A DNA stretch of 62,972 nt, counting the filler, from Trichosphaerium sp. ATCC 40318 (lineage: Eukaryota > Protista > Tubulinea): the NCBI GenBank assembly GCA_038496445.1. It is 5 parts of 5 records of this genome, joined end to end, with 100 filler letters (N's around TTAATTAATTAA, not from the genome) between each part and the next. Parts side by side here need not be neighbours in the genome. Positions count along the whole stretch, not along the records: positions 36,658 to 58,989 come from JALMLS010000327.1; 4 more parts are not named here. One strand, 5' to 3'. The notes beneath the pieces are model-generated. The model searched no databases and was not told the origin of the DNA. It saw only the letters and a list, made by a program, of their open reading frames with translations. The first letter of the stretch is position 1. Every line of letters begins with the position of its first letter. Positions 36,768 through 57,969 of the stretch are shown here, in pieces. The position numbers and the translations under genes are program-made.

Positions 36768-37803
36768 CAGGGCTGAAACTCAGCTAGGCATTGCCTTAAA
36801 GAATGATGCATATTCCTAACATTTGGCATCAGATGGCAAAATCAAGGCATTTGCATTTGGTAATGCCCAATAAAATAAGGCATTTTTACAAAAAGGCAAT
36901 GCCTTCATCAAAAAGGCATTAATACCAGCATTTTTGGGCATCTTTTGGTATTGCATAAAATCAGGTAATGCCTTGTATTGCATTTTTTGGCATTGCATAA
37001 AATCAAGTAATGCCCTGTATTGCAAGTACTTTATGCCTTTATTATGCCTTATTTTTTTAAGCAATATATGCCTTGTATTTTAATTCATATATAAGGCATT
37101 GCCTATACTATATCATAGGACTGATCACATTAAGGAAGTGGTTTAAGGTAAGTAACAGTCAAACAACTTTTACACTTTTTTTTTCACATCACCTACTGAC
37201 GTTTTATATAGACAGGCATCTAGCGCTCTTAGTAATTCATGAAATTAGACGAAACCACCGCCAAACGAACCGCAGCACCCTATTTCACCTACAACAGTAG
37301 TAGGAGTGAACTCCGCGATATTTCCGGGACCGCGGAATTCTAACACTACAAGGTAAGTTTTTTTTTTTTTTTTTTCTACACCATCTCATATTTTCTTTAA
37401 GGTTTTTTCAAATGTGGACTTAGGAGTTTTGTGTATTGTATGTGTACTGTATTATAAAATAAATATTTGTGTTATTACCTGAAAATGCCCTGGTTTATTA
37501 GGCACTGTAGACTATGATAATGCCTTCTTTTTGCCTTCAAAATAAGGCATTGATGCATGAGTTATGCCCTAATTTGAAGGCATAATTCCTTAAAATATGC
37601 AAGCAAAACCATTGCAATCTTGTGTACCAGATGCAAGCATTTTTCATCAAATATAAGGCATTTTTGTAGCAAAAAATAAGGCATTGCCCTGTATTTGCCT
37701 TTTTGAATGAGGCAAAAACTAGGCATTTTTGTAAAAAATAAGGCATTTTTTGATGAAAATGCCTATGCATTGTCCAAAAATGCCTTGTTGAGTTTCAGCC
37801 CTG
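36768..37803. mobile_element. Non-autonomous TIR element A (MITE-like); mirror of 47161-48197
   Basis: TIR CAGGGCTGAAACTCA at both ends; many subterminal AGGCA/TGCCT motifs. Confidence 0.85.
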
Positions 37804-38544
37804 TGTGAGAATTGAATAACAGTATACTGGACACTTACACTAAGTTCAAAGGTATATCAGTTATTATCAAACAGATTGGGCACAATTGGTGGTTATGTGC
37901 AACTACAAGGCCAGTTACCATCACATACAAATGCACAAGGAGTTTCAAGAATGGATGGGCATCGAGTGGAACAGTTTATTTTATTGATTCACACAACTTC
38001 CCTTTGGTTTTAAATTGGCACCATGGCTCTTCACAAAGATCAACAGAGTTATGGCTGTGCATTTGTGTGTGTTAGAAGTAATTATTGTTATATGGTTTGA
38101 CGATTGGATAATAGGTAGATAAGGGCATTTACAACTGACCAAAAGAATTGAATTCCTTGAATTAATCATAGACACTGACAGAGCAGAACTATGCATATCT
38201 GAGTTGAAAATATTCAAGATGTGAGCCCTATTAAAAAACATTATTTGTTCTATTCATATACGAAATTTGGTGCATGTTAAAGATCTTGCAACTTGCATTG
38301 GCAAGATTATTGCTATCAAAGACACATTTTCCCCTGCACAAGTTTTTACTAGAAGTTTTTATAAAACAATTGCTCAAGTAGAAATTTATAACTTACCCTG
38401 GAAGGTTTTGGTGATCCCAGATCTGCAACTATTAAATGATGCCATATGGATATGAAAAGCCCTTCTTCAATGGAATGGCAAGGCAGTATGGTGAGTAAAG
38501 ACAATTCTACAGATCCAAACCAATGCATCTGAAGTAGCCTGGGC

Positions 38545-39276
38545 CAGGGCTGAAACTAAACAAGGCTTTGCCTTAAATACAAAGGCATTTTTGTAAAATC
38601 AGGCATGGATGGCAAAAATCAGGCATTCAAAAATGGCAATGTCTGATTTTGCAAAGGCAATGCCTGTCCTAGTTTTTTTATGCATTGCCAGCCTTAAATT
38701 TACAGGCACCAATTAGGCATTGGTTGTGTACACATTGTACATTAAGGATAGATTGGTTTAAGGTAAGTCTCCACCACACCAACACTTCCTAAACTTTTTT
38801 TTTCATTTACTACTGACGTTTTATATAGACGACGTCACCACGCGCTTAGTATTTTATGGATTCTAACAAAACCACCTTCATTCGAACCGCAGCACCCAAA
38901 TCCACCCACAACAGTAGTACAAGTACTTTAAACCATTTTTCCAGTCTGCGAAAATTATACCAATAATTTGTTAATTTTTTTTTTTAGCTAAAGGTTTTTT
39001 TTCACATGGAGGACATTGCAGTTTTTTGTGTACTGTACTTTAATAAACGAATCACTATTGTATGCCTATATAAAGCCTTGTTTAATGAGTATATGGTGCC
39101 TGGGTTATGCCCAAAAATTGAGGGCAAAAATGCCTTATTGTTGCAATAAAAATGAGGCATTATTGGACCAACAATGCAGGCTATTTTAAGACTAATTAGT
39201 GAACCAGTTGCTTGCTATTTGACCCAAATATGAGGCTTCAAAGCCCAACATTACAAGGCAATGCCTCATATTTGCC
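38545..39276. mobile_element. TIR element B, one end deleted; mirror ~45688-46419
   Basis: Starts CAGGGCTGAAACTAAA and matches the full copy at 48705-49546 but lacks one terminus. Confidence 0.8.
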
Positions 39277-40468
39277 AAACACAGTAGCATGGATGTGAAA
39301 AGGACCACGGGATCCTTACATTGACTTTGTGGTGAAAAAGATGTGGTTGTTGCTTTTAAGCACAAACATGACTTTGTTGCTGCTGGTGTGGATTCCATCA
39401 GCAGAAAACGAAGTGGATTGGCCAAGCAGGATTGTGGATCTTGAAGATTGGACAATAACAGACGAATTCTTCAATTTAGTGGAGGACGTTTTCACTCCAC
39501 ACATGATTGCTTGCTTTGCTTTGTTGATAAACAATTGACTAGATAGGTTCAACAGTTGTTGGGACCAACCTTGGGCAGAAGCAGTAAATGCAATGGCTCA
39601 AGATTGGATCAGAGAGAACAACTACACCTGTCCACCAGTAAGGTTATTGCAGGACATACTAAATCTGTTAGAAAAACAAAAAGCGACAGCTATGTTGATA
39701 GTTTCAAGATGGCCAGCACAGCTGTGGTGGCCAACTCTTTTACGTTTGACGATGGCAATGCTAAAGCTAGGCACAGGGATGGACGTATTCATCCAAGGGC
39801 CCAGTGGTTCTGTAGAACCCTTCAAGAATGTGCATTGGGTGTTTTTGGCGGTGCAGATAAATTAACAGATAATGCTATGAAGGATCTGTCACAAGCACTC
39901 TCTTTTCTGGTGATGGACATAGTGAGAACATGCATAAAAACTATGAAAAGAGAGTGGCGTTCTATTTTCTTCCAGCAAAACCTGAAACTGTAGCATTATA
40001 TATTTCGTCACATTTTTGTTTAGGTGCTACATTGGTGTCAAGAGTGGCATCGGCAGCGATCTCTTTAGTCCACAAGTCCGCTGAGTTTACACCGCTGTCA
40101 TGTACAGGTTGCTTTAATCTCCTTAAGTTAACAAAGGCTGGAATTGAGAAGGCTCAACTGAGAAGAAAGAAGATAGACCTGTTTGATCTAAAAGATTTGG
40201 TTTATTGGTGCAATAACGCGAAAGAGAAGTTTTCCGAGTTCGTGTACCACAAAAACGTGTGTATCATTGCGCTGTACATTTGTACAATGCAAAGACCAGA
40301 AATCACAAAAGTTAAGTTTTAAACCATGAACACGTGGTGGTTGAAAAAGACGGATCGGTTTCTGTCTTGATCGTTTGCACAAAAACTACACAGTTTGGAG
40401 CGGCGCATGAGATTCCTATAGAACCTATTAGGGACGCTGATACTAAAATTTGTCCTGTTAAATTGATT

Positions 40469-41040
40469 TAGAGATGGCAGAAATACCGGTCCGAACCGGT
40501 TCCGGACCGAAACGCAAAAGACCAGTCCGTAAACGGTCCAAACGGTCCGCTGTCAAAGGGAGTACCCTTGGAAAATCGGAAAAATAGCCGAAAAAGGAAT
40601 TTTTGTCAAAGGGTACTCCCTTGGATTTTTATTGGTCCAAACGGTCCCTGTCACAAAATCTCAGAACCCTCCATCTATTGACCTACTCACTGTGTGCATG
40701 CACATAAGGTGGCTGTACACTTTTTGTGGCAGGTTTGAATATCACACTTTTTTTTTTTTCATACCTAAAATAGTTTAGATACTATTATTTCGCGTAAGCA
40801 ATGCACTTGATAAGTTGCTTTACACGCACAAAGTGATAAAAAGATGTTTGGGTGAAAGTGTATGAAAGTATGTAACATCACATGATTTTGTCCAAATGTC
40901 AAAATAACGTCACCACAGGCACATTTTGACTCAAAAAAAGTAGCGGTTAGGCCAGTGTGACCTTGTTTTACCACGCTAAACTTAATTTTGTTAAAACGGG
41001 CTGATTGAGGGCTTTCAACCACTCTATGTGTAGAACTCTC
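40469..41040. mobile_element. Insertion interrupting the YR frame; mirror 43924-44495
   Basis: YR frame CPVKLI resumes as LNYLNITK after ~570 bp. Starts TAGAGATGG; has internal repeats AAACGGTCC x3 and TGTCAAAGGG..CCCTTGGA x2. Confidence 0.6.
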
Positions 41041-41409
41041 AATTTTAAATTATTTGAATATTACTAAACATCTTAAGGATGATGGACCGTTGTTTGTCAA
41101 AGTAAACAAGCGTGACGAGCAATTGGGACCCAGTGGCATCTCAGCAGTGTTTAGACAAGTGGTTAAGTTCGCTGGTAGTACCAAAAGAATCAGTGGGAGG
41201 TTGGCGAGAATAGCAGGAGCATCTTTGGCTGCGTATGCAGATATTCTGTGTGTGGTTTACATGGACATTGCACATTGGTCACTAAATGGAACCAGTGACA
41301 GGCATTACCTACGAAGAGGTCAGGCTGAGAAGCTACAAATATCCAAGCGTATGTTCTCTATATAAATAAAAGTTGTGATAGAGAGGCTCTCTACTCAAAA
41401 CACATAGTG

Positions 41410-41496
41410 GTTTGACTTATGTTTTAAAATTACTCTCGTTTATCATATTTTAATACAATTATACGAGTAATTTCCTAAAACTTAACAAGTCAAACA
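41410..41496. repeat. Imperfect hairpin after the YR stop, candidate DIRS internal complementary region
   Basis: GTTTGACTT..AAATTACTC pairs with GAGTAATTT..AAGTCAAAC; position matches the ICR of DIRS1-type elements. Confidence 0.45.
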
Positions 41497-42254
41497 GACT
41501 TAAGTGTTATTCTCTTTTACAACTTCGAATAACACAACTCTTCTATACACTTGGCTCTTGATGTCGGCTTCTGAACTCCCACCCTCCCACCACGTGATCT
41601 CTATATTTTTAATCACAGCATATGAGCTGTTGTGTCAATGTAAACGTCAGCGTGGGAATGCCGCAACAACTGGCTAGTTGTTTATGACGTCACTAGGACG
41701 GGTGCTTCCTGATATGACGAGAGAGGTTTTAGTGCTTGAAAATTGTGCACAGACATGGTATGTTGTTCGCCTTAATTCAGCGAACAAATATTGTGGAACT
41801 GTAAGATCGGATAGGCGTTAAGGTTTTATTCGAAGAGTGTATATCTTGTACAAAGTGAATTACACATTCTCTGTATACAACTTGGAAGTACATTAAGTGT
41901 GATTTGTTTAACGTTCAATGAATACAAAGTTTGTATTCTCCAACATTGTAGCCAAGTAAAAAGCTCGGTTGTTTTTTGTGATCTATATGATTCCGTTAGC
42001 AGCACTTACATAAATTATGTTCAAAACTACTGGCTAAAACTATTTAAGGTCAAATATTATCAAATAACAGCATCAATCTAAAGTTGTTACACCATCAGTC
42101 TCATCTGAAAGCAAAAACTTCTTATAACCTCTTATAACCATTTATTCTACTGTTGCTAAGTAACTTTCCAATCTCAAAAAGTAAGCAACTAAGTGAGGAC
42201 TTTAACTTTACCAACTCTCCCTTAGCAAATTACCCAAATTCAATATACATTATT

Positions 42255-42581
42255 GTTAAATTTACAGAAAACCCTAACCAACCAATTAAAGCTGGATATC
42301 AAAGTCAACAGCAAGGACACAAGATTAGATAAAGCAGATTTGTAGCTCAAGGTGTATTACAATTGATGTACTTTGTTGACTAAGTTGTGATTTTAGATGT
42401 ACAGACTGTTGCTCGTTATATCATTGCAGTTAAACGAAAACCAAACCAACAACCAACCACACAGTTAGAACAGCAACTGCTGAAAGAAAATGAAGAACTT
42501 AAACAAGCCAATCTAAAATTAGATAAAAATAACAAAGCTTTGCAACATCAAATTAATAAGCGTAAAAAGAAGAGCAAATAA
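42255..42581 (+). pseudogene. 3' fragment of a paralog of the ankyrin-PARP gene (PARP end plus a different coiled-coil tail)
   Basis: Nucleotide match to ~53950-54200 (reverse complement) including the same intron and DVQTVARYIIAVKRK. Multiple micro-deletions in 42255-42360. Confidence 0.8.
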
Positions 42582-43363
42582 TAACTTAAACATGTTCTAG
42601 CTGAGATTGACAGTAACAATAAAACTACAAAGTAATAAACTCCAACAATGTCCTCTATGCCATGACTAAGAAGAATACAGTCAATCAAAGAATAGAATGG
42701 AAACCATTTGGTAATGTATATTGAATTTGGGTAATTTGCTAAGGGAGAGTTGGTAAAGTTAAAGTCCTCACTTAGTTGCTTACTTTTTGAGATTGGAAAG
42801 TTACTTAGCAACAGTAGAATAAATGGTTATAAGAGGTTATAAGAAGTTTTTGCTTTCAGATGAGACTGATGGTGTAACAACTTTAGATTGATGCTGTTAT
42901 TTGATAATATTTGACCTTAAATAGTTTTAGCCAGTAGTTTTGAACATAATTTATGTAAGTGCTGCTAACGGAATCATATAGATCACAAAAAACAACCGAG
43001 CTTTTTACTTGGCTACAATGTTGGAGAATACAAACTTTGTATTCATTGAACGTTAAACAAATCACACTTAATGTACTTCCAAGTTGTATACAGAGAATGT
43101 GTAATTCACTTTGTACAAGATATACACTCTTCGAATAAAACCTTAACGCCTATCCGATCTTACAGTTCCACAATATTTGTTCGCTGAATTAAGGCGAACA
43201 ACATACCATGTCTGTGCACAATTTTCAAGCACTAAAACCTCTCTCGTCATATCAGGAAGCACCCGTCCTAGTGACGTCATAAACAACTAGCCAGTTGTTG
43301 CGGCATTCCCACGCTGACGTTTACATTGACACAACAGCTCATATGCTGTGATTAAAAATATAG

Positions 43364-46300
43364 AGATCACGTGGTGGGAGGGTGGGAGTTCAGAAGCCGA
43401 CATCAAGAGCCAAGTGTATAGAAGAGTTGTGTTATTCGAAGTTGTAAAAGAGAATAACACTTAAGTCTGTTTGACTTGTTAAGTTTTAGGAAATTACTCG
43501 TATAATTGTATTAAAATATGATAAACGAGAGTAATTTTAAAACATAAGTCAAACCACTATGTGTTTTGAGTAGAGAGCCTCTCTATCACAACTTTTATTT
43601 ATATAGAGAACATACGCTTGGATATTTGTAGCTTCTCAGCCTGACCTCTTCGTAGGTAATGCCTGTCACTGGTTCCATTTAGTGACCAATGTGCAATGTC
43701 CATGTAAACCACACACAGAATATCTGCATACGCAGCCAAAGATGCTCCTGCTATTCTCGCCAACCTCCCACTGATTCTTTTGGTACTACCAGCGAACTTA
43801 ACCACTTGTCTAAACACTGCTGAGATGCCACTGGGTCCCAATTGCTCGTCACGCTTGTTTACTTTGACAAACAACGGTCCATCATCCTTAAGATGTTTAG
43901 TAATATTCAAATAATTTAAAATTGAGAGTTCTACACATAGAGTGGTTGAAAGCCCTCAATCAGCCCGTTTTAACAAAATTAAGTTTAGCGTGGTAAAACA
44001 AGGTCACACTGGCCTAACCGCTACTTTTTTTGAGTCAAAATGTGCCTGTGGTGACGTTATTTTGACATTTGGACAAAATCATGTGATGTTACATACTTTC
44101 ATACACTTTCACCCAAACATCTTTTTATCACTTTGTGCGTGTAAAGCAACTTATCAAGTGCATTGCTTACGCGAAATAATAGTATCTAAACTATTTTAGG
44201 TATGAAAAAAAAAAAAGTGTGATATTCAAACCTGCCACAAAAAGTGTACAGCCACCTTATGTGCATGCACACAGTGAGTAGGTCAATAGATGGAGGGTTC
44301 TGAGATTTTGTGACAGGGACCGTTTGGACCAATAAAAATCCAAGGGAGTACCCTTTGACAAAAATTCCTTTTTCGGCTATTTTTCCGATTTTCCAAGGGT
44401 ACTCCCTTTGACAGCGGACCGTTTGGACCGTTTACGGACTGGTCTTTTGCGTTTCGGTCCGGAACCGGTTCGGACCGGTATTTCTGCCATCTCTAAATCA
44501 ATTTAACAGGACAAATTTTAGTATCAGCGTCCCTAATAGGTTCTATAGGAATCTCATGCGCCGCTCCAAACTGTGTAGTTTTTGTGCAAACGATCAAGAC
44601 AGAAACCGATCCGTCTTTTTCAACCACCACGTGTTCATGGTTTAAAACTTAACTTTTGTGATTTCTGGTCTTTGCATTGTACAAATGTACAGCGCAATGA
44701 TACACACGTTTTTGTGGTACACGAACTCGGAAAACTTCTCTTTCGCGTTATTGCACCAATAAACCAAATCTTTTAGATCAAACAGGTCTATCTTCTTTCT
44801 TCTCAGTTGAGCCTTCTCAATTCCAGCCTTTGTTAACTTAAGGAGATTAAAGCAACCTGTACATGACAGCGGTGTAAACTCAGCGGACTTGTGGACTAAA
44901 GAGATCGCTGCCGATGCCACTCTTGACACCAATGTAGCACCTAAACAAAAATGTGACGAAATATATAATGCTACAGTTTCAGGTTTTGCTGGAAGAAAAT
45001 AGAACGCCACTCTCTTTTCATAGTTTTTATGCATGTTCTCACTATGTCCATCACCAGAAAAGAGAGTGCTTGTGACAGATCCTTCATAGCATTATCTGTT
45101 AATTTATCTGCACCGCCAAAAACACCCAATGCACATTCTTGAAGGGTTCTACAGAACCACTGGGCCCTTGGATGAATACGTCCATCCCTGTGCCTAGCTT
45201 TAGCATTGCCATCGTCAAACGTAAAAGAGTTGGCCACCACAGCTGTGCTGGCCATCTTGAAACTATCAACATAGCTGTCGCTTTTTGTTTTTCTAACAGA
45301 TTTAGTATGTCCTGCAATAACCTTACTGGTGGACAGGTGTAGTTGTTCTCTCTGATCCAATCTTGAGCCATTGCATTTACTGCTTCTGCCCAAGGTTGGT
45401 CCCAACAACTGTTGAACCTATCTAGTCAATTGTTTATCAACAAAGCAAAGCAAGCAATCATGTGTGGAGTGAAAACGTCCTCCACTAAATTGAAGAATTC
45501 GTCTGTTATTGTCCAATCTTCAAGATCCACAATCCTGCTTGGCCAATCCACTTCGTTTTCTGCTGATGGAATCCACACCAGCAGCAACAAAGTCATGTTT
45601 GTGCTTAAAAGCAACAACCACATCTTTTTCACCACAAAGTCAATGTAAGGATCCCGTGGTCCTTTTCACATCCATGCTACTGTGTTTGGCAAATATGAGG
45701 CATTGCCTTGTAATGTTGGGCTTTGAAGCCTCATATTTGGGTCAAATAGCAAGCAACTGGTTCACTAATTAGTCTTAAAATAGCCTGCATTGTTGGTCCA
45801 ATAATGCCTCATTTTTATTGCAACAATAAGGCATTTTTGCCCTCAATTTTTGGGCATAACCCAGGCACCATATACTCATTAAACAAGGCTTTATATAGGC
45901 ATACAATAGTGATTCGTTTATTAAAGTACAGTACACAAAAAACTGCAATGTCCTCCATGTGAAAAAAAACCTTTAGCTAAAAAAAAAAATTAACAAATTA
46001 TTGGTATAATTTTCGCAGACTGGAAAAATGGTTTAAAGTACTTGTACTACTGTTGTGGGTGGATTTGGGTGCTGCGGTTCGAATGAAGGTGGTTTTGTTA
46101 GAATCCATAAAATACTAAGCGCGTGGTGACGTCGTCTATATAAAACGTCAGTAGTAAATGAAAAAAAAAGTTTAGGAAGTGTTGGTGTGGTGGAGACTTA
46201 CCTTAAACCAATCTATCCTTAATGTACAATGTGTACACAACCAATGCCTAATTGGTGCCTGTAAATTTAAGGCTGGCAATGCATAAAAAAACTAGGACAG

Positions 46301-47160
46301 GCATTGCCTTTGCAAAATCAGACATTGCCATTTTTGAATGCCTGATTTTTGCCATCCATGCCTGATTTTACAAAAATGCCTTTGTATTTAAGGCAAAGCC
46401 TTGTTTAGTTTCAGCCCTGGCCCAGGCTACTTCAGATGCATTGGTTTGGATCTGTAGAATTGTCTTTACTCACCATACTGCCTTGCCATTCCATTGAAGA
46501 AGGGCTTTTCATATCCATATGGCATCATTTAATAGTTGCAGATCTGGGATCACCAAAACCTTCCAGGGTAAGTTATAAATTTCTACTTGAGCAATTGTTT
46601 TATAAAAACTTCTAGTAAAAACTTGTGCAGGGGAAAATGTGTCTTTGATAGCAATAATCTTGCCAATGCAAGTTGCAAGATCTTTAACATGCACCAAATT
46701 TCGTATATGAATAGAACAAATAATGTTTTTTAATAGGGCTCACATCTTGAATATTTTCAACTCAGATATGCATAGTTCTGCTCTGTCAGTGTCTATGATT
46801 AATTCAAGGAATTCAATTCTTTTGGTCAGTTGTAAATGCCCTTATCTACCTATTATCCAATCGTCAAACCATATAACAATAATTACTTCTAACACACACA
46901 AATGCACAGCCATAACTCTGTTGATCTTTGTGAAGAGCCATGGTGCCAATTTAAAACCAAAGGGAAGTTGTGTGAATCAATAAAATAAACTGTTCCACTC
47001 GATGCCCATCCATTCTTGAAACTCCTTGTGCATTTGTATGTGATGGTAACTGGCCTTGTAGTTGCACATAACCACCAATTGTGCCCAATCTGTTTGATAA
47101 TAACTGATATACCTTTGAACTTAGTGTAAGTGTCCAGTATACTGTTATTCAATTCTCACA
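43364..47160 (-). mobile_element. Decayed DIRS1-type element copy 1, right palindrome arm
   Basis: Mirror of 37804-41600. Confidence 0.85.
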
Positions 47161-48197
47161 CAGGGCTGAAACTCAACAAGGCATTTTTGGACAATGCATA
47201 GGCATTTTCATCAAAAAATGCCTTATTTTTTACAAAAATGCCTAGTTTTTGCCTCATTCAAAAAGGCAAATACAGGGCAATGCCTTATTTTTTGCTACAA
47301 AAATGCCTTATATTTGATGAAAAATGCTTGCATCTGGTACACAAGATTGCAATGGTTTTGCTTGCATATTTTAAGGAATTATGCCTTCAAATTAGGGCAT
47401 AACTCATGCATCAATGCCTTATTTTGAAGGCAAAAAGAAGGCATTATCATAGTCTACAGTGCCTAATAAACCAGGGCATTTTCAGGTAATAACACAAATA
47501 TTTATTTTATAATACAGTACACATACAATACACAAAACTCCTAAGTCCACATTTGAAAAAACCTTAAAGAAAATATGAGATGGTGTAGAAAAAAAAAAAA
47601 AAAAAACTTACCTTGTAGTGTTAGAATTCCGCGGTCCCGGAAATATCGCGGAGTTCACTCCTACTACTGTTGTAGGTGAAATAGGGTGCTGCGGTTCGTT
47701 TGGCGGTGGTTTCGTCTAATTTCATGAATTACTAAGAGCGCTAGATGCCTGTCTATATAAAACGTCAGTAGGTGATGTGAAAAAAAAAGTGTAAAAGTTG
47801 TTTGACTGTTACTTACCTTAAACCACTTCCTTAATGTGATCAGTCCTATGATATAGTATAGGCAATGCCTTATATATGAATTAAAATACAAGGCATATAT
47901 TGCTTAAAAAAATAAGGCATAATAAAGGCATAAAGTACTTGCAATACAGGGCATTACTTGATTTTATGCAATGCCAAAAAATGCAATACAAGGCATTACC
48001 TGATTTTATGCAATACCAAAAGATGCCCAAAAATGCCTGGTATTAATGCCTTTTTGATGAAGGCATTGCCTTTTTGTAAAAATGCCTTATTTTATTGGGC
48101 ATTACCAAATGCAAATGCCTTGATTTTGCCATCTGATGCCAAATGTTAGGAATATGCATCATTCTTTAAGGCAATGCCTAGCTGAGTTTCAGCCCTG
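47161..48197. mobile_element. TIR element A at the junction of two tandem DIRS segments
   Basis: TIRs CAGGGCTGAAACTCA. Left flank is RT sequence and right flank is MT sequence of a second copy; no TSD. Confidence 0.85.
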
Positions 48198-50589: not shown

Positions 50590-51986
50590 AGTGTTAGTAA
50601 CACGTACATGGTTTGAGCTTGTCCTCAATTGTACTTTCAAGCATTGCTAAGATAAGTGCTTGAGTTGGTTGTTTTTTGGCTTCTAGCGCCCATATAACCT
50701 TTACAGTCGAAGAAAAGGTCTCAATGATATCATCAATGATTGTCCAGTGGTATGTAGTAAAGTCAGGGATGTTCTTTAAAAACTAAATGCATATCAGTGC
50801 TCTGAGCGTTTACTATAAAAAAAAGTACCTTTTTCTCCACTTCTTTCGTTAATACTTTTAACTCTTCTTGTACTGCTTTAAAGGAGGAGAGCATACTAAT
50901 TTTGGAGCTCCATCAAGTGACAACGTCACGTTTTACTTTTTTAGCTTTGTCACCACATACTTTAATCCATGCTAGATACATGTTGTTGGATGTATTTAAT
51001 CCAGTAATGAAGTGTCGAATGGGCACAAAAATAGAGTTTTCCAGATCCTCTAACACATGTGACATTGCATTGTTCAATTAATTGCTTTGAATGTTATTTT
51101 TTGTGTTAATTTAGTACGTACACATAAGTATACTTGATAGAAGCTACTTCACCACCATCTGTGACACCTGTGACAGGCATGACTTCATCACCCAACCACG
51201 ATTCACCTGAGCTATCAGCTTTGCCTTGACACTTGTGACCAATCTACCAATTGTTGTGGCTGTAATAAACATAAATTAAATAAATTAAGTAATGAACGCT
51301 ATGATGCACCTTTATGGTTACCTTCAACGTATGGTAACCCAATGAGAGCTCGTTTTGGTTTAAAATCATCTGTTAGCGAATGCAGTGTTATTGCACAATA
51401 ATAATCCTTTGTTTGACTACATTTCCAAAGATTGGCAGCAAATGTAGGGTATTTGGCTCTTTGTGTTTCTTTTTTTAAGTCACGCATTGTGCTCTTGTAC
51501 TTTTCGTCAATTATGCCTGTCATGGTATTTGGACAGGGTAATGTGTAGCCTGCAATCAGCTCCCTCATCAAGTCAACAAATTGAGGGTTTTGCACCAAGT
51601 TTAGTGGTAAGTTACCAACCACAATCAGCTTTGTCACGAGTTCATCAATGTGCTAAAAAAAGAAAGTAAATATAGGGAAGGAAGGAGTAAATGAGCATGT
51701 GCACCTTTTGTTTCTTTTTTGATACGGGTATAACACTTTTGTTACCAAAAAAGTCTTCCATTACTTGAGCTTGTTTAGTTTTTCCAAGCCATGGAAATTC
51801 GTCTTCTTTACTTTTGTATCCGTGATCTTTGCGCAAATGCTTGAGCTGGTTGGAAGTGGTGCCATGTTGAGGAGGAACAAATGTCTGACAAAACACACAT
51901 CTATTGTCTGTGTAGTACTTGTGAACGTTGGATCTTTGCTTGTAGTACCTTTTTTGGTGCTCGATGTTGCTTGCCTGAAGTTGCAT
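50590..51986 (-). pseudogene. hAT-family transposase remnant with BED zinc finger and introns
   Basis: CVFC..GTTSNQLKHLRKDH (BED); LPLNLVQNPQF..Y.LP; FAANLWK..YCAITLH (catalytic D replaced by N); RDVVT*WSS (degenerate TRWNS). Confidence 0.85.
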
Positions 51987-53470
51987 TTTGGTGTTCTAAA
52001 AATATTCAAATATTCAACAGAAAGATTCAAATTTGCTATTTTTGGTGTGTATTCAAATATTCAAATTCAAATATTCATAGTTTGAGAATGTTACTACACT
52101 CCATCAACTATTGCTATAAATTACACTGTGCAATACCACACATGGTGACTATCACTATGAAAGTGGGGATCGTCAATTAGCTCTTGAGGTATTTAAAAAT
52201 AGTGTTAGACAACACTTCAGTAATTTAAACGCTTGTCAAAGCTTGTGTAATTGCTAATTTTGGGAACTTGCTTTTTCTTTATTCTTTACACCACAAACTA
52301 ACTTTTTCAGCGTTTCTAGTGCAATGAACGTTGTTTAGGTACTTTGTATACACTTGTTCATATTTTGGTACCATAATCCTTGTTTTAGACTATAATGCTT
52401 CTATTGCTGTTTAAGCACTGTTTATAACTGTTGCTGGCTTGATTAATGTGTTTGTGGGCAATGAAGCTCAGTTGACGCTTTTTTAGTTAAGTCTTAAAAA
52501 ACGCCAAAAAACAAGTAAAAAAGTAAATAATTTATTCCACATGTAGAACGTAAACAATAGAGCCATTCATTCCAAAGGTACATTCACACAGAATAAAGCA
52601 TTGATATGAGAGGTGTGAACCCCTTAAAAAAATCGTTCCTAGTGGTAAAACATAACTACAGCAAGCTTTATGGACCTCTGATTCAATAAAGTACCAAGCA
52701 AGAGTGAATATTTTGACATTTTCATTTTAATATTATGTTCATCAACTTCTATGAAAAAGTAACCTCCGTGTTTTGATACCTAAATTATCAAATACTCTAT
52801 AACTGCATATAGGTACACAATGATTTATTGAACAACTGCCAGCAAAAGGAAAGATTTGAAAAGGTATCTGTGGGTTAGAATGATTGTTCAAAATAGTGAC
52901 CAATTTACGGCAATCAGGTCTAGAGACGGGTGATGATAGCTTTATGTGGAACACTGAAAGTGAAAAAAATTGCAAGAAACAACAGAATGTAATCCTTAAT
53001 CACTATGCTGTAAAAGAATTACCTGCAAAACATGGTGGTGTTAGAGGAGAAGAATGTGATCCCAGGCAGAAAAAACTCGGTTTTAGATTCAATGAAATAG
53101 TTGATTGAAGTACACTATCAATTACCAGCAAGTTCTGGTTTAACAAAATTGTAGACACAAATGTGTTCTGAAGCATACCCAAAATTTGGCCAAAAATAAC
53201 GTTTTTGAGGTGTGCTAGACTTTTTTTGAAAGTGTGAACTGCTTGCAAAAATCGTCCCTACTTTACATTACAGTATCTGTATGGGTATTGATGCAGTTGA
53301 CAACATGAAAACCAAAATAATCAAACAAAATGTTTTTTTGGCAACACAAGGATTTTGTTAAAAACACTGTAGTAATGTAGTTTCTATATGCGTGCAAACA
53401 AAAAGCAAGATAAAAAGTGTTTATTTTCAGTTGTAACAGAGGTTTGTGTCACAAAATGTTGACAATTTAG

Positions 53471-56400
53471 TTATTTTAATTGCTGGCTTAGTCTAGTATT
53501 GATTTCCGACAGTCTTCTGTGAACTTGTTTTAGTCTTTTGTTTTCTTCCAATAGCTTGTCATATGCGGTTGGTTGTTGTATTTGAGTCTCATTTGAATAG
53601 CTAGAGGCCCATAATTGCCTTTGCACAAAAGTAAGTAAGAAAGTGATTGATCGCACTTATTTTGTACCGCTTGTCACCAGTACTCTCTGATGTTGCAGAT
53701 GATTTCTTTGCTCTTTTCCTTTGTATTTGGGGCTCATTCGAATAGCTAGAGGCCCATAATTGTCTTTGCACAAAAGTAAGTAAGGAAAGTGATTGATCAC
53801 ACTTATTTTGTACCGATTGGAGACAAAGTTGTCACAATCATCAAAATCAGACAAGTCATCAGAACCAGATTCACCGATACCCCCTGATGCTGCAGGTGAT
53901 TGGATCTTGTTGGTTTTCTTGGACAGTTTCTTTACTCTTTTCCTGTTTTGGTTTTTTCGTTTAACTGCAATGATATAACGAGCAACAGTCTGTACATCTA
54001 AAATCACAACTTAGTCAACAAAGTACATCAATTGTAATCACTACCTTGAGCTACAACTAGCTCATCATACATTGCTTTATCTATTTTATCTTGCTCCAAC
54101 ACTTGTCCTTTGCTGTTTACCAATACATAGTGACTTTGATATCCAGCTTTAATTGGTTTACCAACAAGGTTATCTTCATCTTTAGGGTTTTCTGTAACCT
54201 ATCAATGCTTTGTAAGTAAACAAACCAGTAATGTGATTGGTTGCAGTTGTGTACAGGATATACATTCCCAGGCGTAACCAAACTAAGCACAAGTGTCTTC
54301 TTGTTGTCTTTACCAGATGTATCATATGAACAGGCATACTTAATGCTGCGCTATTTCAAAAAACAAGTCAGATTGGCAATGGTGACTTTTTAACCATACT
54401 GTAAAATAGATTCCTTGACCGTAGTATCCAGCATCCAACGAACTTAATACTCCAAATCCAGCCTTTACAATACTCCAAGCGGCTTTATGAGATGTTCCGT
54501 GAACCATTAATACAACTGGTAGCTGATTATTGGGTTAACAATGCACATGTATAAAATATACCTGATCAGAAACGTCATGGATACAGGCGCTGGATTTCGC
54601 TATGAGATTAAAAGCATGCTTTGCAACTCTTTTCTTGTGATCATTGTGGTCATCAGTTTTGTTCCATGTGTCTGGTAGGTCTCTAATTAAAACATTTCTG
54701 TTAAGAATTCACTTGTAGTAATAAAATAGTTCCTCAACGTATAAACGTACTGGTGTCTTTGCTTCAGCATGGTATTGTATGTGCCAAAGTTGTCGGTCAA
54801 TATATCATTGCAAACAAGATGAGCTTCTACAACATCATATTTATCATAGCCGTGCATCGTTGACATTTGTTGGTAAAGAAACTGTAGTTCTCTCTTGGCT
54901 ACAATATCATTTTTATTTGAATCAAGAAGATTCAGTGTTCTGAAGTGTGTTGCTTTTTTAATTGTACCCCTTTTTTGTTCACAAAAACAGTTAAACACGA
55001 GTTAATAAATACTTATGTTGCTACTCACTTGCTGTTAGATCTATCCCAGGTGTGGGCATAATGTAATCTTGGATTTAAGTCCCATGACGTCTCACTTTTT
55101 AACCCTTCAAGTTTTAGTGTGGTTGGACTAACAGTGCTTTTTTACCTGCTGTAGGGTTTTCAACTCTTTGATTTGGAGATATAGGATTAATAACGTGTTT
55201 GCAATCCTTGCATTCACATTTTTTGAAACTACCAATGTGCTTAGAGAGCTTCTACTCAAACTGTTAGCAAAAATAACTACAAAACAATTACGTGGTTTTG
55301 ATTATGTTGAGTTGCACAATAACTGCACAAATACAATCCATATTGAGAACACTCATAGCAAGCAAACGCTGTACAATGTTAATAAAAGAAATACCACTAA
55401 ACACATACTATCTTGCTTGGGTACTTTTTGAAGAGAATTTGTACACCATCCTTCTTTTATACACATTTCAATAACAGACCCAGTTTGTTTAGTATTACTC
55501 CACATATCATCTGGTAAGTCGGATAGAATTCCTTCCATCAGCTCTCCTTGCTGTAACCAAAAGCTCTAATGAACCAAAATAAGTTATTATATTACACATA
55601 CTTGTATTATGTGTTCATACCGAAGATTGTACAAATGTGCGATTATATGTACAAATCAAATGACAAATGCCTTTTTGCATTGCAAGTTTAAAATATGGAC
55701 GTGTTGGCTTTGTGTGATTAGTACTTAATAGTTGGTACAAAAGGAAGACATACCAAGTATTGCAACCATTTTGCAAGATTGAGTCGCCAGTGAGGTATCT
55801 CTTTCATATGAGCACATGATAACCATAGTTCACAACTTTGTTGATCATTTGGAAACAGTGTCAAAAGAGTTTCAAACACATTGATGAACGCAGGCTCATC
55901 AGCAACCACCTGTGTTAGTATTTTGATTAAAGCCTCTTTCCATTCAATTGAAATTAATAAAATGTCTATAGTTTGTTTCAACAATGTTTTCAAAACTGGG
56001 TTGTGCCCATTTTTTGCTAATATGAATTTAATGTCTTCAAATCAAGTTTATTTGTATAAATACCTGCACAAATTAAAGCAGTACTTCCATTGTCTCGTTT
56101 GGCTTCAATGTTGGCTCCTGATTCAAGTAATACTTTTATCACATTATTGTGTCCATTAAAGGCTACCAATTAAGAGTATATGTGAGTAACAGATGTTGTT
56201 ATGGTTAAACACAATCATACCTGCATCAATCAAAGCAGTACTTTCATCTTTTTCTTTGGCTTCAATATTGGCTCCTGATTCAAGTAATACTTTTATCACA
56301 TTATCGTGTCCATTATATGCTACCAATTAAAGAGTATGTGAGTAACAGATGTTGTTATGGTTAAGCACTATCATACCTGCATTAATCAAAGCAGTGATTC

Positions 56401-57969
56401 CATTTTTTTCTTTGGCTTCAATGTTGGCTCCTGATTCAAGTAATACTTTTATCACATTATCATGTCCATTATATGCTACCAATTAAAAAGTATGTGAGTA
56501 ACAGATGTTGTTATGGTTAAGCACTATCATACCTGCATCAATCAAAGCAGTATGTCCATTTTTTTCTTTGGCTTCAATGTTGGCTCCTGATTCAAGTAAT
56601 ACTTTTATCACATTATCATGTCCTTTATATGCTACCAATTAAAGAGTATGTGAGTAACAGATGTTGTTATGGTTAAGCACTATCATACCTGCGCCAATTA
56701 AAGCAGTGATTCCATTGTCTCGTTTGGCTTCAATGTTGGCTCCTGATTCAAGTAATACTTTTATCACATTATCGTGTCCATTATATGCTACCAATTAAAG
56801 AGTATGTGAGTAACAGATGTTGTTATGGTTAAGCACTATCATACCTGCATTAATCAAAGCAGTGCTTCCATTTTTTTCTTTGGCTTCAATGTTGGCTCCT
56901 GATTCAAGTAATACTTTTATCACATTATTGTGTCCATTATATGCTACCAATTAAAAAGTATGTGAGTAACAGATGTTGTTATTAAACACAATCATACCTG
57001 CATCAATCAAAGCAGTACTTCCATTTTTTTCTTTGGCTTCAATATTGGCTCCTGATTCAAGTAATACTTTTATCACATTATCATGTCCATTATATGCTAC
57101 CAATTAAAGAGTATGTGAGTAACAGATGCTGTTATAGTTAAACACTATCATACCTGCGCTAATTAAAGCAGTGATTCCATCTTTTTCTTTGGCTTCAATG
57201 TTGGCTCCTGATTCAAGTAATACTTTTATCACATTATCATGTCCTTGAATGGCTACCAATTAAAGAGTATGTGAGTAACAGATGTTGTTATGGTTAAGCA
57301 CTATCATACCTGCATTAATCAAAGCAGTGCTTCCATTTTTTTCTTTGGCTTCAATGTTGGCTCCTGATTCAAGTAATACTTTTATCACATTATCATGTCC
57401 ATTATATGCTACCAATTAAAGAGTATGTGAGTAACAGATGATGTTATATTTAAACACTATCATACCTGCACCAAGTAAAGCTGTATAGCCATTATTATTT
57501 TTTGCTTCAATGTTCAATCTTGATTGTATGCATAACATTACAATAACATGGAGATTGTTGCAAGCTACAAATTGGGTTGATACTTAAGTGTTGGTAAATA
57601 CAAACCTGAATAGAATAGAATGTCGTTTGCTATGTCAAGAGTATGTAGACTTTGTATCAGCACATCACCTAAAGGAAAAGTGTTTTTATTATAAGAGAAC
57701 GTGTTTAAACCAAAGGAGGTACATGTAGTAATATTGGGGTATTTGCATTGAAGCTGCGCCAATTCGGCTATTGAAGATTTTTAATAAACGGAGAGGTAGA
57801 TCAAAGATTCGTTTCTATTACCTTTTAATTCTGATTCTTCGATGCTATGTGGCTCTGCCATGAAGCGTTGTAACCAGTGTTGATTGTATGGTAAAATGGT
57901 TTTAAGTTTCGCCGACGGTTCATAGAATTGTTTGTGTTCCGGCTCGTGTACATTGTTTGCGTTCAACAT
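53471..57969 (-). CDS. Ankyrin-repeat array + UBR-box-like zinc finger + PARP-type ADP-ribosyltransferase (H-Y-E) + coiled coil; many exons, frame intact in manual splicing
   Basis: N-cap, 9 x A(YN)GHDNVIKVLLESGANIEAK(EKNGS)TALI(D)A, C-cap. Then CTN..Q..FACYECS..LCSYCATQHNQNH..CECKDC. Then LMVHGTS..IVKAGF..GYYGQGIYFTRSIKYACSY..PGNVY..YQSHY..MYDELVVAQDVQTVARYII. TAA at 53471-53473. Confidence 0.85.
56064..57564 (-). repeat. Tandem array of ~156-bp units, each a 99-nt ankyrin exon plus a ~57-nt intron
   Basis: Exons at 56064, 56221, 56377, 56533, 56689, 56845, 56998, 57154 and 57310, plus N-cap 57466. Introns read GTATGAT..TACTCAC..TTGGTAG. Confidence 0.95.

Follow-up and report, generated by a model that had tools for sequence, protein, structure and literature searches.

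An expressed Trichosphaerium gene that joins an ankyrin array to a divergent PARP-like domain and belongs to a multigene family

Ankyrin repeats are known to be fused to PARP catalytic domains in the tankyrases and in the ankyrin-type Clade 1 PARPs, and such fusions arose repeatedly in eukaryotes (PMC4245714). Here, a gene of this general kind is described from positions 53,471 to 57,969 of a 62,972-nucleotide (nt) stretch of DNA of Trichosphaerium sp. ATCC 40318 (assembly GCA_038496445.1), the whole of which is referred to as the window. The tankyrases (PARP5a/5b, Clade 4) resemble the product of this gene in having an N-terminal ankyrin array, a C-terminal PARP domain with a His-Tyr-Glu (H-Y-E) triad, and a multimerizing element. 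C. elegans PME-5 and Dictyostelium ADPRT3, both of Clade 1, also carry ankyrin repeats N-terminal to the PARP domain, so that the Amoebozoa are included among the known cases (PMC4245714). Clade 1 PARPs typically have WGR and a helical PARP regulatory domain (PARP_reg) and group with the DNA-repair PARPs. A further point of comparison is provided by PARP12, ZAP (PARP13), PARP10 and PARP4, which were the best profile and fold matches of the catalytic domain and are cytoplasmic, modular proteins with N-terminal target-recognition domains. PARP12, ZAP and PARP10 are antiviral in vertebrates. Proteins of this group are built with CCCH fingers, WWE or macro domains in place of ankyrin repeats, and their identity to the domain studied here is 13 to 18%; in PARP12 and PARP10 the catalytic Glu is replaced by Ile, and ZAP lacks activity, whereas Glu is kept in the present family.

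Compared with the tankyrases, the window gene lacks a SAM domain and ends instead in a C-terminal leucine zipper, has its array and enzyme separated by a helical linker and a Cys/His cassette, and is built from near-identical single-exon repeats within a lineage-specific multigene family. Tankyrase-1 gave an E value of 0.78 with the catalytic family profile, and orthology to the tankyrases was rejected on this ground and on the lack of SAM. In contrast to typical Clade 1 members, neither WGR nor PARP_reg was matched in the exon pieces or homologs with Pfam, and PARP1/2 ranked low by profile. The absence of SAM, WGR and PARP_reg, together with the profile ranking, indicates that the gene falls outside both the tankyrases and the ankyrin-type Clade 1 PARPs; its ankyrin fusion is convergent. 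An initial annotation of the sequence had not recognized the architecture from described proteins. The arrangement is not wholly unprecedented, given the tankyrase and Clade 1 fusions (PMC4245714). Overall, the gene probably encodes an ankyrin-targeted, dimeric ADP-ribosyltransferase (ART), modular, intact and expressed, from a birth-and-death family.

A spliced, expressed gene with an array of one-repeat exons

No long open reading frame (ORF) is present in this 4.5-kb interval before splicing. When the gene was rebuilt by hand and by script, a minus-strand coding sequence of 26 exons (57969..53474) was obtained, encoding 1068 residues in a single open frame that ends at a TAA stop (53473-53471). 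All 25 introns are GT-AG and 39 to 68 nt in length. The GC content of the window (33 to 42%) and the short introns agree with the Trichosphaerium draft genome, reported to have 37.7% GC and, per gene, 8.7 introns averaging 75 bp (PMC10521059).

Contigs from two public RNA runs were aligned to 53300-56200. CT..AC joints, equivalent to GT..AG on the minus strand, fell exactly at the predicted borders of eight introns (55753-55708, 55620-55566, 55408-55369, 55028-54970, 54750-54683, 54561-54523, 54399-54351 and 53813-53764), and a ninth intron, 54254-54199, was supported by contig pieces. Exon 55707-55621 and two acceptor sites in the tail were set by RNA joints and differ from a simple frame-based model. 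In run X1, 122 contigs were aligned, 44 of them at an identity of at least 99% and 47 at 90 to 95%; it follows that the gene is expressed and has expressed paralogs. One paralog contig of 376 nt (depth 62.8), with a splice at 55707/55754, spans linker exon 55754-55944 and continues into the last ankyrin exon from 56074, providing RNA evidence that ankyrin and downstream exons lie on one transcript. The gene is real, spliced, expressed and intact. The continuous GT-AG frame of the initial annotation was thus confirmed, and its order of ankyrin array, helical linker, Cys/His finger, PARP domain and C-terminal coiled coil was supported by the rebuilt gene; the RNA mapping that it had proposed as a check gave nine of the 25 introns. 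On the joining of ankyrin to PARP exons, the ankyrin-to-linker junction was found, in the contig of a paralog only.

The array contains ten 99-nt phase-1 exons, each encoding one 33-residue repeat and separated by introns of 54 to 58 nt. With a degenerate N-terminal capping unit and a C-terminal half unit on either side, the total comes to about 11 to 12 units, close to the 11 first estimated. A single ankyrin exon by itself passed the Pfam Ank_4 model (24.5 bits, above the cut-off). Tandem Repeats Finder (TRF) detected a repeat at 56060-57514 with a period of 156 bp (9.3 copies, 91% matches) and a second period of 465 bp. Repeats 2, 5 and 8 differ from one another by just 1 to 3 nt, which, together with the 465-bp period, points to recent duplication of three-unit blocks. 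The array grew through duplication of exon-plus-intron units.

Among the nine core repeats, amino acid differences were observed only at repeat positions 2, 3, 6, 23-27 and 32, which correspond to positions 1-5, 10, 13, 14 and 17 in designed-ankyrin-library numbering. Five of the six positions randomized in the designed ankyrin (DARPin) library vary, compared with 4 of the 27 others (Fisher p 0.003). At the nine variable codons, the mean pairwise divergence was 0.25 per site, with nonsynonymous (pN) and synonymous (pS) values of 0.25 and 0.23; at the remaining 24 codons it was 0.025 per site (pN 0, pS 0.10), and in the array introns 0.048 per site. The amino acid differences between repeats are confined to the canonical ligand-binding surface, a pattern that fits a recognition surface diverging while the framework was held or homogenized.

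The PARP-like domain and its relatives

Because the domains are divided among exons of 25 to 90 residues and Pfam was run on single exons, single-exon signals were weak. Exon 54400-54522 alone scored 18.3 bits with Pfam PARP (PF00644), below the gathering cut-off of 26.7 bits, which several paralogs passed (P0014, 35.7; P0001, 30.9; P0002, 36.5; and P0007, 52.7 bits; also P0010 and P0009; relatives are cited by such handles throughout). Against the family hidden Markov model (HMM), the window domain scored 325 bits. An AlphaFold (AF2) model was made of P0002:40-335, which is 58% identical to the window core; its mean predicted local distance difference test (pLDDT) value was 65, with 80 to 90 in the core. 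When this model was searched against the PDB with Foldseek, the top 50 matches were all PARP catalytic domains (probability 1.00, E ∼5e-9), among them PARP4, 12, 10, tankyrase, ZAP and PARP1, at 13 to 18% identity. Matches among AlphaFold DB clusters were nearly all annotated as "PARP catalytic domain-containing" proteins.

The family profile gave E values of 7.6e-10 for PARP12, 8.7e-8 for ZAP, 3.8e-6 for PARP10 and 7.7e-6 for PARP4, compared with 0.1 to 0.8 for PARP1/2 and the 0.78 of tankyrase-1, the subfamily placement being one of profile scores and not of a tree. Tyr841 and Glu921 aligned with their PARP4 counterparts, and His810 fell within positions 51-90 of the Pfam profile, the corresponding stretch. 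Across the family, the Tyr, the Glu and the motifs G-x-G-I-Y-x-T, P-G-N, G-Y-Q-S-H and E-L-V were invariant, suggesting a conserved active site. In the distant members P0003, P0005, P0006, P0011, P0012 and P0016, Gln replaces the NAD+-binding His while Tyr and Glu are kept; judging from this substitution, these relatives may be altered or inactive enzymes. P0003 carries two PARP-like halves.

By these measures, the domain belongs to the PARP/ARTD superfamily, its ART fold being confirmed by proxy. The H-Y-E PARP domain proposed in the initial annotation was accordingly supported, through the Pfam score of P0014, the Foldseek result for P0002 and the three triad residues of the window gene; the proxy model matched PARP domains only. 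Its remark that no SAM was apparent also held, as Pfam found no SAM in the translated window exons or in P0001 and P0002. No NTPase switch domain of the kind found in STAND/NLR-like receptors was matched by Pfam in the exons of the window gene, and a Roc-COR module precedes the domain in distant relatives only.

The family was seeded from the 72-residue exon 54753-54968, searched against 1.84 billion representatives, and then expanded. The seed search retrieved P0001 and P0002 from JGI transcript contigs, 63 to 66% identical over the exon; at least seven ankyrin repeats are encoded farther upstream in the contig of P0001, beyond a run of N. A profile search placed 12 proteins in the family among 5.8 billion, a count from a word-seeded and length-restricted search, so that the true number may be higher. 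Part of this set comes from the amoebozoan Trichosphaerium sp. ATCC 40318, as transcripts of MMETSP0405. The Trichosphaerium MMETSP transcript P0014 is the nearest paralog, with 89% identity to the window gene over residues 724-940, and over the core P0010 reaches 95%; the overall identity of the retrieved transcript proteins was 49 to 77%. Ankyrin repeats with a PARP-like domain were also found in the independent transcripts or ORFs L001, P0007 and L040, lying upstream of the module in the latter two. The window itself holds a decayed second member, broken by in-frame stops and by deletions, on the opposite strand at a distance of 11 kb from the gene. The gene is a member of a multigene family in a Trichosphaerium-like amoebozoan. 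It is not the conserved single-copy ortholog with an invariant array that the initial annotation had named as its counter-case: the paralogs are divergent and expressed, one copy is a pseudogene fragment, and the array varies at its surface.

Relatives of the PARP-like domain were encoded at 85 metagenome loci, in varied contexts. The module lies downstream of Roc-COR ORFs in L005, L007-L010/L044 and L046, and in L007, L009 and L010 the two ORFs are linked in frame through a GT-AG intron of 69 to 70 nt that has a pyrimidine tract, an arrangement that would yield a Roc-COR-PARP-like fusion protein. In L022, a protein kinase ORF ends 137 nt upstream of the module. EGF-like or Cys-rich ORFs were found upstream at varying distance in L016, L019 and L021, and also in L053, and P0004 has a transmembrane-like hydrophobic stretch; such relatives suggest receptor-like proteins with an intracellular PARP-like output.

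In the regions that hold Roc-COR and PARP-like parts together (L007:1708-5631, L009:1513-5437, L010:1655-5594, L005:3-4036, and L046), the Roc-COR ORF is of about 1000 residues. The poly-T tract of the joining intron varies in length, and a 315-residue ankyrin gene lies just upstream. L066 (222-5999) and L075 contain single ORFs of about 1900 residues, in which Pfam identified a ZNFX1-type helicase and two ordinary PARP domains; similar long ORFs occur at six loci (L068, L070, L073, L074, L077 and L083), and all of these are distant hits, probably of a different clade.

Proposed function and alternatives

As an ankyrin-targeted ADP-ribosyltransferase, the protein would recruit a protein ligand on the concave face of its array, and the zipper would pair two chains, taking the multimerizing part played by SAM in tankyrase. 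Using NAD+ as the donor, the catalytic domain would then ADP-ribosylate either this ligand or itself. Mono-ADP-ribosylation appears likelier than polymer synthesis, because the relatives nearest by profile are mono-ART PARPs and PARP4. A basic cluster in the tail hints at nuclear import. Based on the divergent paralogs, the pseudogene fragment, the optional finger cassette and the placement of the module behind Roc-COR, kinase and EGF-like/transmembrane parts, the family dynamics would mark a fast-evolving output module of signaling or surveillance proteins.

Several points weigh against this interpretation. The start codon and exons 1-2 are supported by the open frame alone, and 16 of the 25 introns were modeled without an RNA junction, those within the array resting on frame and regularity. 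Support from the fold and from Pfam came through paralogs, the window's own single exon reaching about 18 bits, and the mean pLDDT of the fold model was only 65. With Gln in place of the catalytic His in some relatives, not every member need be active, and both enzyme activity and ligand binding are predictions from sequence. Surface-confined variation is usual for ankyrin proteins, and the "hypervariable" codons were partly chosen after the fact. The pN/pS ratio at these codons was about 1, not above 1, and so does not prove positive selection.

A role in defense, as put forward in the initial annotation, is plausible but unproven, and a general signaling output fits the same pattern equally well. 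In its strongest form, the gene would be a dedicated cell-autonomous immune sensor, whose array detects a molecule of a giant virus or intracellular bacterium and whose PARP domain responds by using up NAD+ or by marking proteins of the pathogen or the host, so as to halt the infection. The multigene family with its divergent expressed paralogs and pseudogene fragment, the restriction of inter-repeat differences to the binding surface, the optional finger cassette, and the occurrence of the module behind Roc-COR NTPase modules in relatives would all suit a sensor, as would the antiviral function in vertebrates of PARP12, ZAP and PARP10, its nearest solved relatives by profile. The Trichosphaerium genome was moreover reported to be rich in giant-virus-derived genes (PMC10521059). 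This basis is circumstantial, however; the gene lacks an NTPase switch or death-fold domain, the pN/pS ratio at the variable codons is near 1, the use of the module behind kinase and EGF-like/transmembrane parts fits general signaling, and NAD+ depletion is pure conjecture. We regard the dedicated sensor as possible but doubtful. A wider proposal, in which the PARP-like domain is an undescribed protist output family behind ankyrin, Roc-COR, kinase and EGF-like/transmembrane sensors, and the ankyrin members form a diversifying immune repertoire whose surfaces are renewed by exon-unit duplication and which responds to ligands of pathogens through ADP-ribosylation or NAD+ consumption, is speculative and on present evidence unlikely.

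The remaining alternatives appeared less probable. The order of ankyrin array, C-terminal H-Y-E PARP domain and multimerizing element, the basic cluster resembling a nuclear localization signal (NLS), and the repeated origin of ankyrin-PARP fusions in eukaryotes (PMC4245714) would also be expected of a housekeeping analogue of tankyrase, binding short host motifs, multimerizing, and ADP-ribosylating its targets for turnover or location, possibly in the nucleus. No SAM was found, however, and in the profile ranking tankyrase (E 0.78) trails PARP12, PARP10 and PARP4 by a wide margin. The family has a sparse and patchy distribution (12 of 5.8 billion proteins, in a word-seeded search of limited reach), and its paralogs have diverged strongly, as would not be expected of a conserved housekeeping gene; such a role is improbable. 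Somewhat more so is a catalytically dead pseudo-PARP that acts as a scaffold or binds ADP-ribose or NAD+ only, as ZAP and TASOR do. Strong divergence (13 to 18% identity to solved PARPs) and the Gln-for-His change in the six distant members are in its favor, but the window gene keeps His, Tyr and Glu, and the family-invariant motifs suggest a conserved active site. Least credible is that the gene, instead of descending within an amoebal family, was recently acquired from a viral or bacterial donor, giant viruses and bacteria both being rich in ankyrin proteins. Many giant-virus-derived genes have been reported in Trichosphaerium, 40% of them with introns (PMC10521059), and the surroundings of the gene are rich in mobile-element-like repeats. 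Set against this are its 25 spliceosomal introns and the presence of relatives on intron-bearing, eukaryote-like contigs; in nonexhaustive scans seeded on two short peptide patterns, no relatives were found in 2.9 million viral contigs, and bacterial and archaeal genomes yielded one weak hit, in a bacterial metagenome-assembled genome.

The gene represents an ankyrin-PARP fusion that arose separately, on a catalytic domain of such divergence that it was found in only about 12 proteins of a collection of 5.8 billion and in some 85 metagenome loci. It offers a clear case of an array of one-repeat exons with differences restricted to the binding surface, and of one enzyme module reused behind Roc-COR, kinase and receptor-like parts. 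Should the family be part of a surveillance system, amoebal innate immunity, of which little is known, would gain an ADP-ribosylating branch in the organisms that giant viruses naturally infect. Otherwise, it would still serve as a tractable case of convergence on a tankyrase-like design and, for surveys of PARP evolution, as a candidate new clade.

Linker, Cys/His insert, tail and surroundings

The features located in the window are collected in Table 1. The N-terminal exons 1-2 had no Pfam match, and residues 1-83 are without a recognizable domain. The linker is 39% identical to residues 2-120 of P0001, where it was predicted to be all-helical at a pLDDT below 50 (AF2 model of P0001:1-425). 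Pfam found no match to the linker in the window exons or in P0001 and P0002, a word-indexed search with the linker exon alone returned no homologs, and a protein-atlas look-up with the P0001 linker gave low-score leads only (0.6).

Table 1. Features of the ankyrin-PARP gene and of its decayed relative in the window
Feature	Position	Strand	Evidence
Whole coding region	53474..57969	-	Gene model; spliced RNA contigs for nine introns
N-terminal exons 1-2, aa 1-103	57606..57969	-	Open frame only; end of exon 2 is the start of the degenerate ankyrin unit
Ankyrin array, aa 84-447	55976..57666	-	TRF, Ank_4 match, repeat table
Family-specific helical linker, aa 448-581, three exons	55473..55975	-	Homology to P0001; splice joints 55707/55754 and 55565/55621
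Cys/His-rich insert, aa 582-647	55195..55472	-	Residue list, exon phases, RNA joint 55368/55409
Divergent PARP-like ADP-ribosyltransferase domain, aa 664-938, seven exons	53963..55146	-	Family HMM, Pfam, proxy fold, six RNA-confirmed internal introns
His810	54499-54501	-	H-Y-E triad
Tyr841	54406-54408	-	H-Y-E triad
Glu921	54061-54063	-	H-Y-E triad
Tail, aa 939-1036	53570..53962	-	Basic NLS-like cluster, acidic Ser/Asp stretch, duplicated intron plus exon start
C-terminal leucine zipper, aa 1037-1068	53474..53569	-	Leu every seventh residue over four heptads, from sequence
Decayed second family member	42234-42530	+	tblastn of the model and P0010/P0014, 41% identity, E 4e-9

The Cys/His finger was present where it had been noted in the initial annotation (about 55200-55450). 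The insert contains 9 Cys and 4 His with the spacing C-x5-C-x14-C-x2-C-x7-C-x2-C-x3-H-x3-H-x4-H-x6-C-x-C-x2-C-x-H. Most of it is encoded by two exons, 55292-55368 (77 nt) and 55146-55251 (106 nt), which total 183 nt and are in phase 1 at both ends, so that together they form an in-frame cassette. This cassette is missing from P0001 and P0002, the two paralogs that cover the region. Its spacing recalls the UBR-box pattern, C-x2-C ... C-x2-C ... H-x(2-3)-H ... C-x-C, and the likeness extends to a segment of about 65 residues with 13 Cys/His. The label "UBR-box-like" was nevertheless not supported, and identity with the UBR box was rejected: the spliced 75-residue finger had no match to zf-UBR (PF02207) at E ≤ 10 (best Pfam match zf-C2H2_9, E 0.12), and a sequence search of solved structures in the PDB gave none. 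A weak half match to the B-box (PF00643; E 0.11, 13.1 bits compared with a cut-off of 24.1) was seen in the unspliced ORF of the first finger exon and was not recovered on the spliced finger. The finger is a real, RNA-covered but unclassified Cys/His module.

In the tail, introns 53764-53813 and 53619-53667 are near-identical, one intron having been duplicated in tandem together with the beginning of the exon after it. Through this duplication (53619-53813, minus strand), the segment "QLWASSYSNE" occurs twice in the tail, compared with once in P0014, the nearest paralog. The paralogs P0001 and P0002 have coiled-coil tails longer than the leucine zipper of the window gene.

Between the palindrome described below and the gene, two adjacent minus-strand ORFs of 112 to 113 residues lie at 51299-51986. 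One of them carries a C-x2-C ... H-x4-H motif that recalls the BED-type finger of hAT transposases, and neither had a Pfam match at E ≤ 0.01. A perfect inverted repeat of 5325 nt occupies 36928-42252 and 42712-48036, the arms being 100% complementary and separated by a spacer of 459 nt; ORFs of 145, 130 and 103 residues within it, each present twice, had no Pfam match. The decayed family member straddles the end of the left arm and the spacer. Further inverted pieces of 97 to 99% identity extend the structure to 36672 and 50191, and the palindrome may be either a mobile element in palindromic arrangement or an artifact of long-read assembly.

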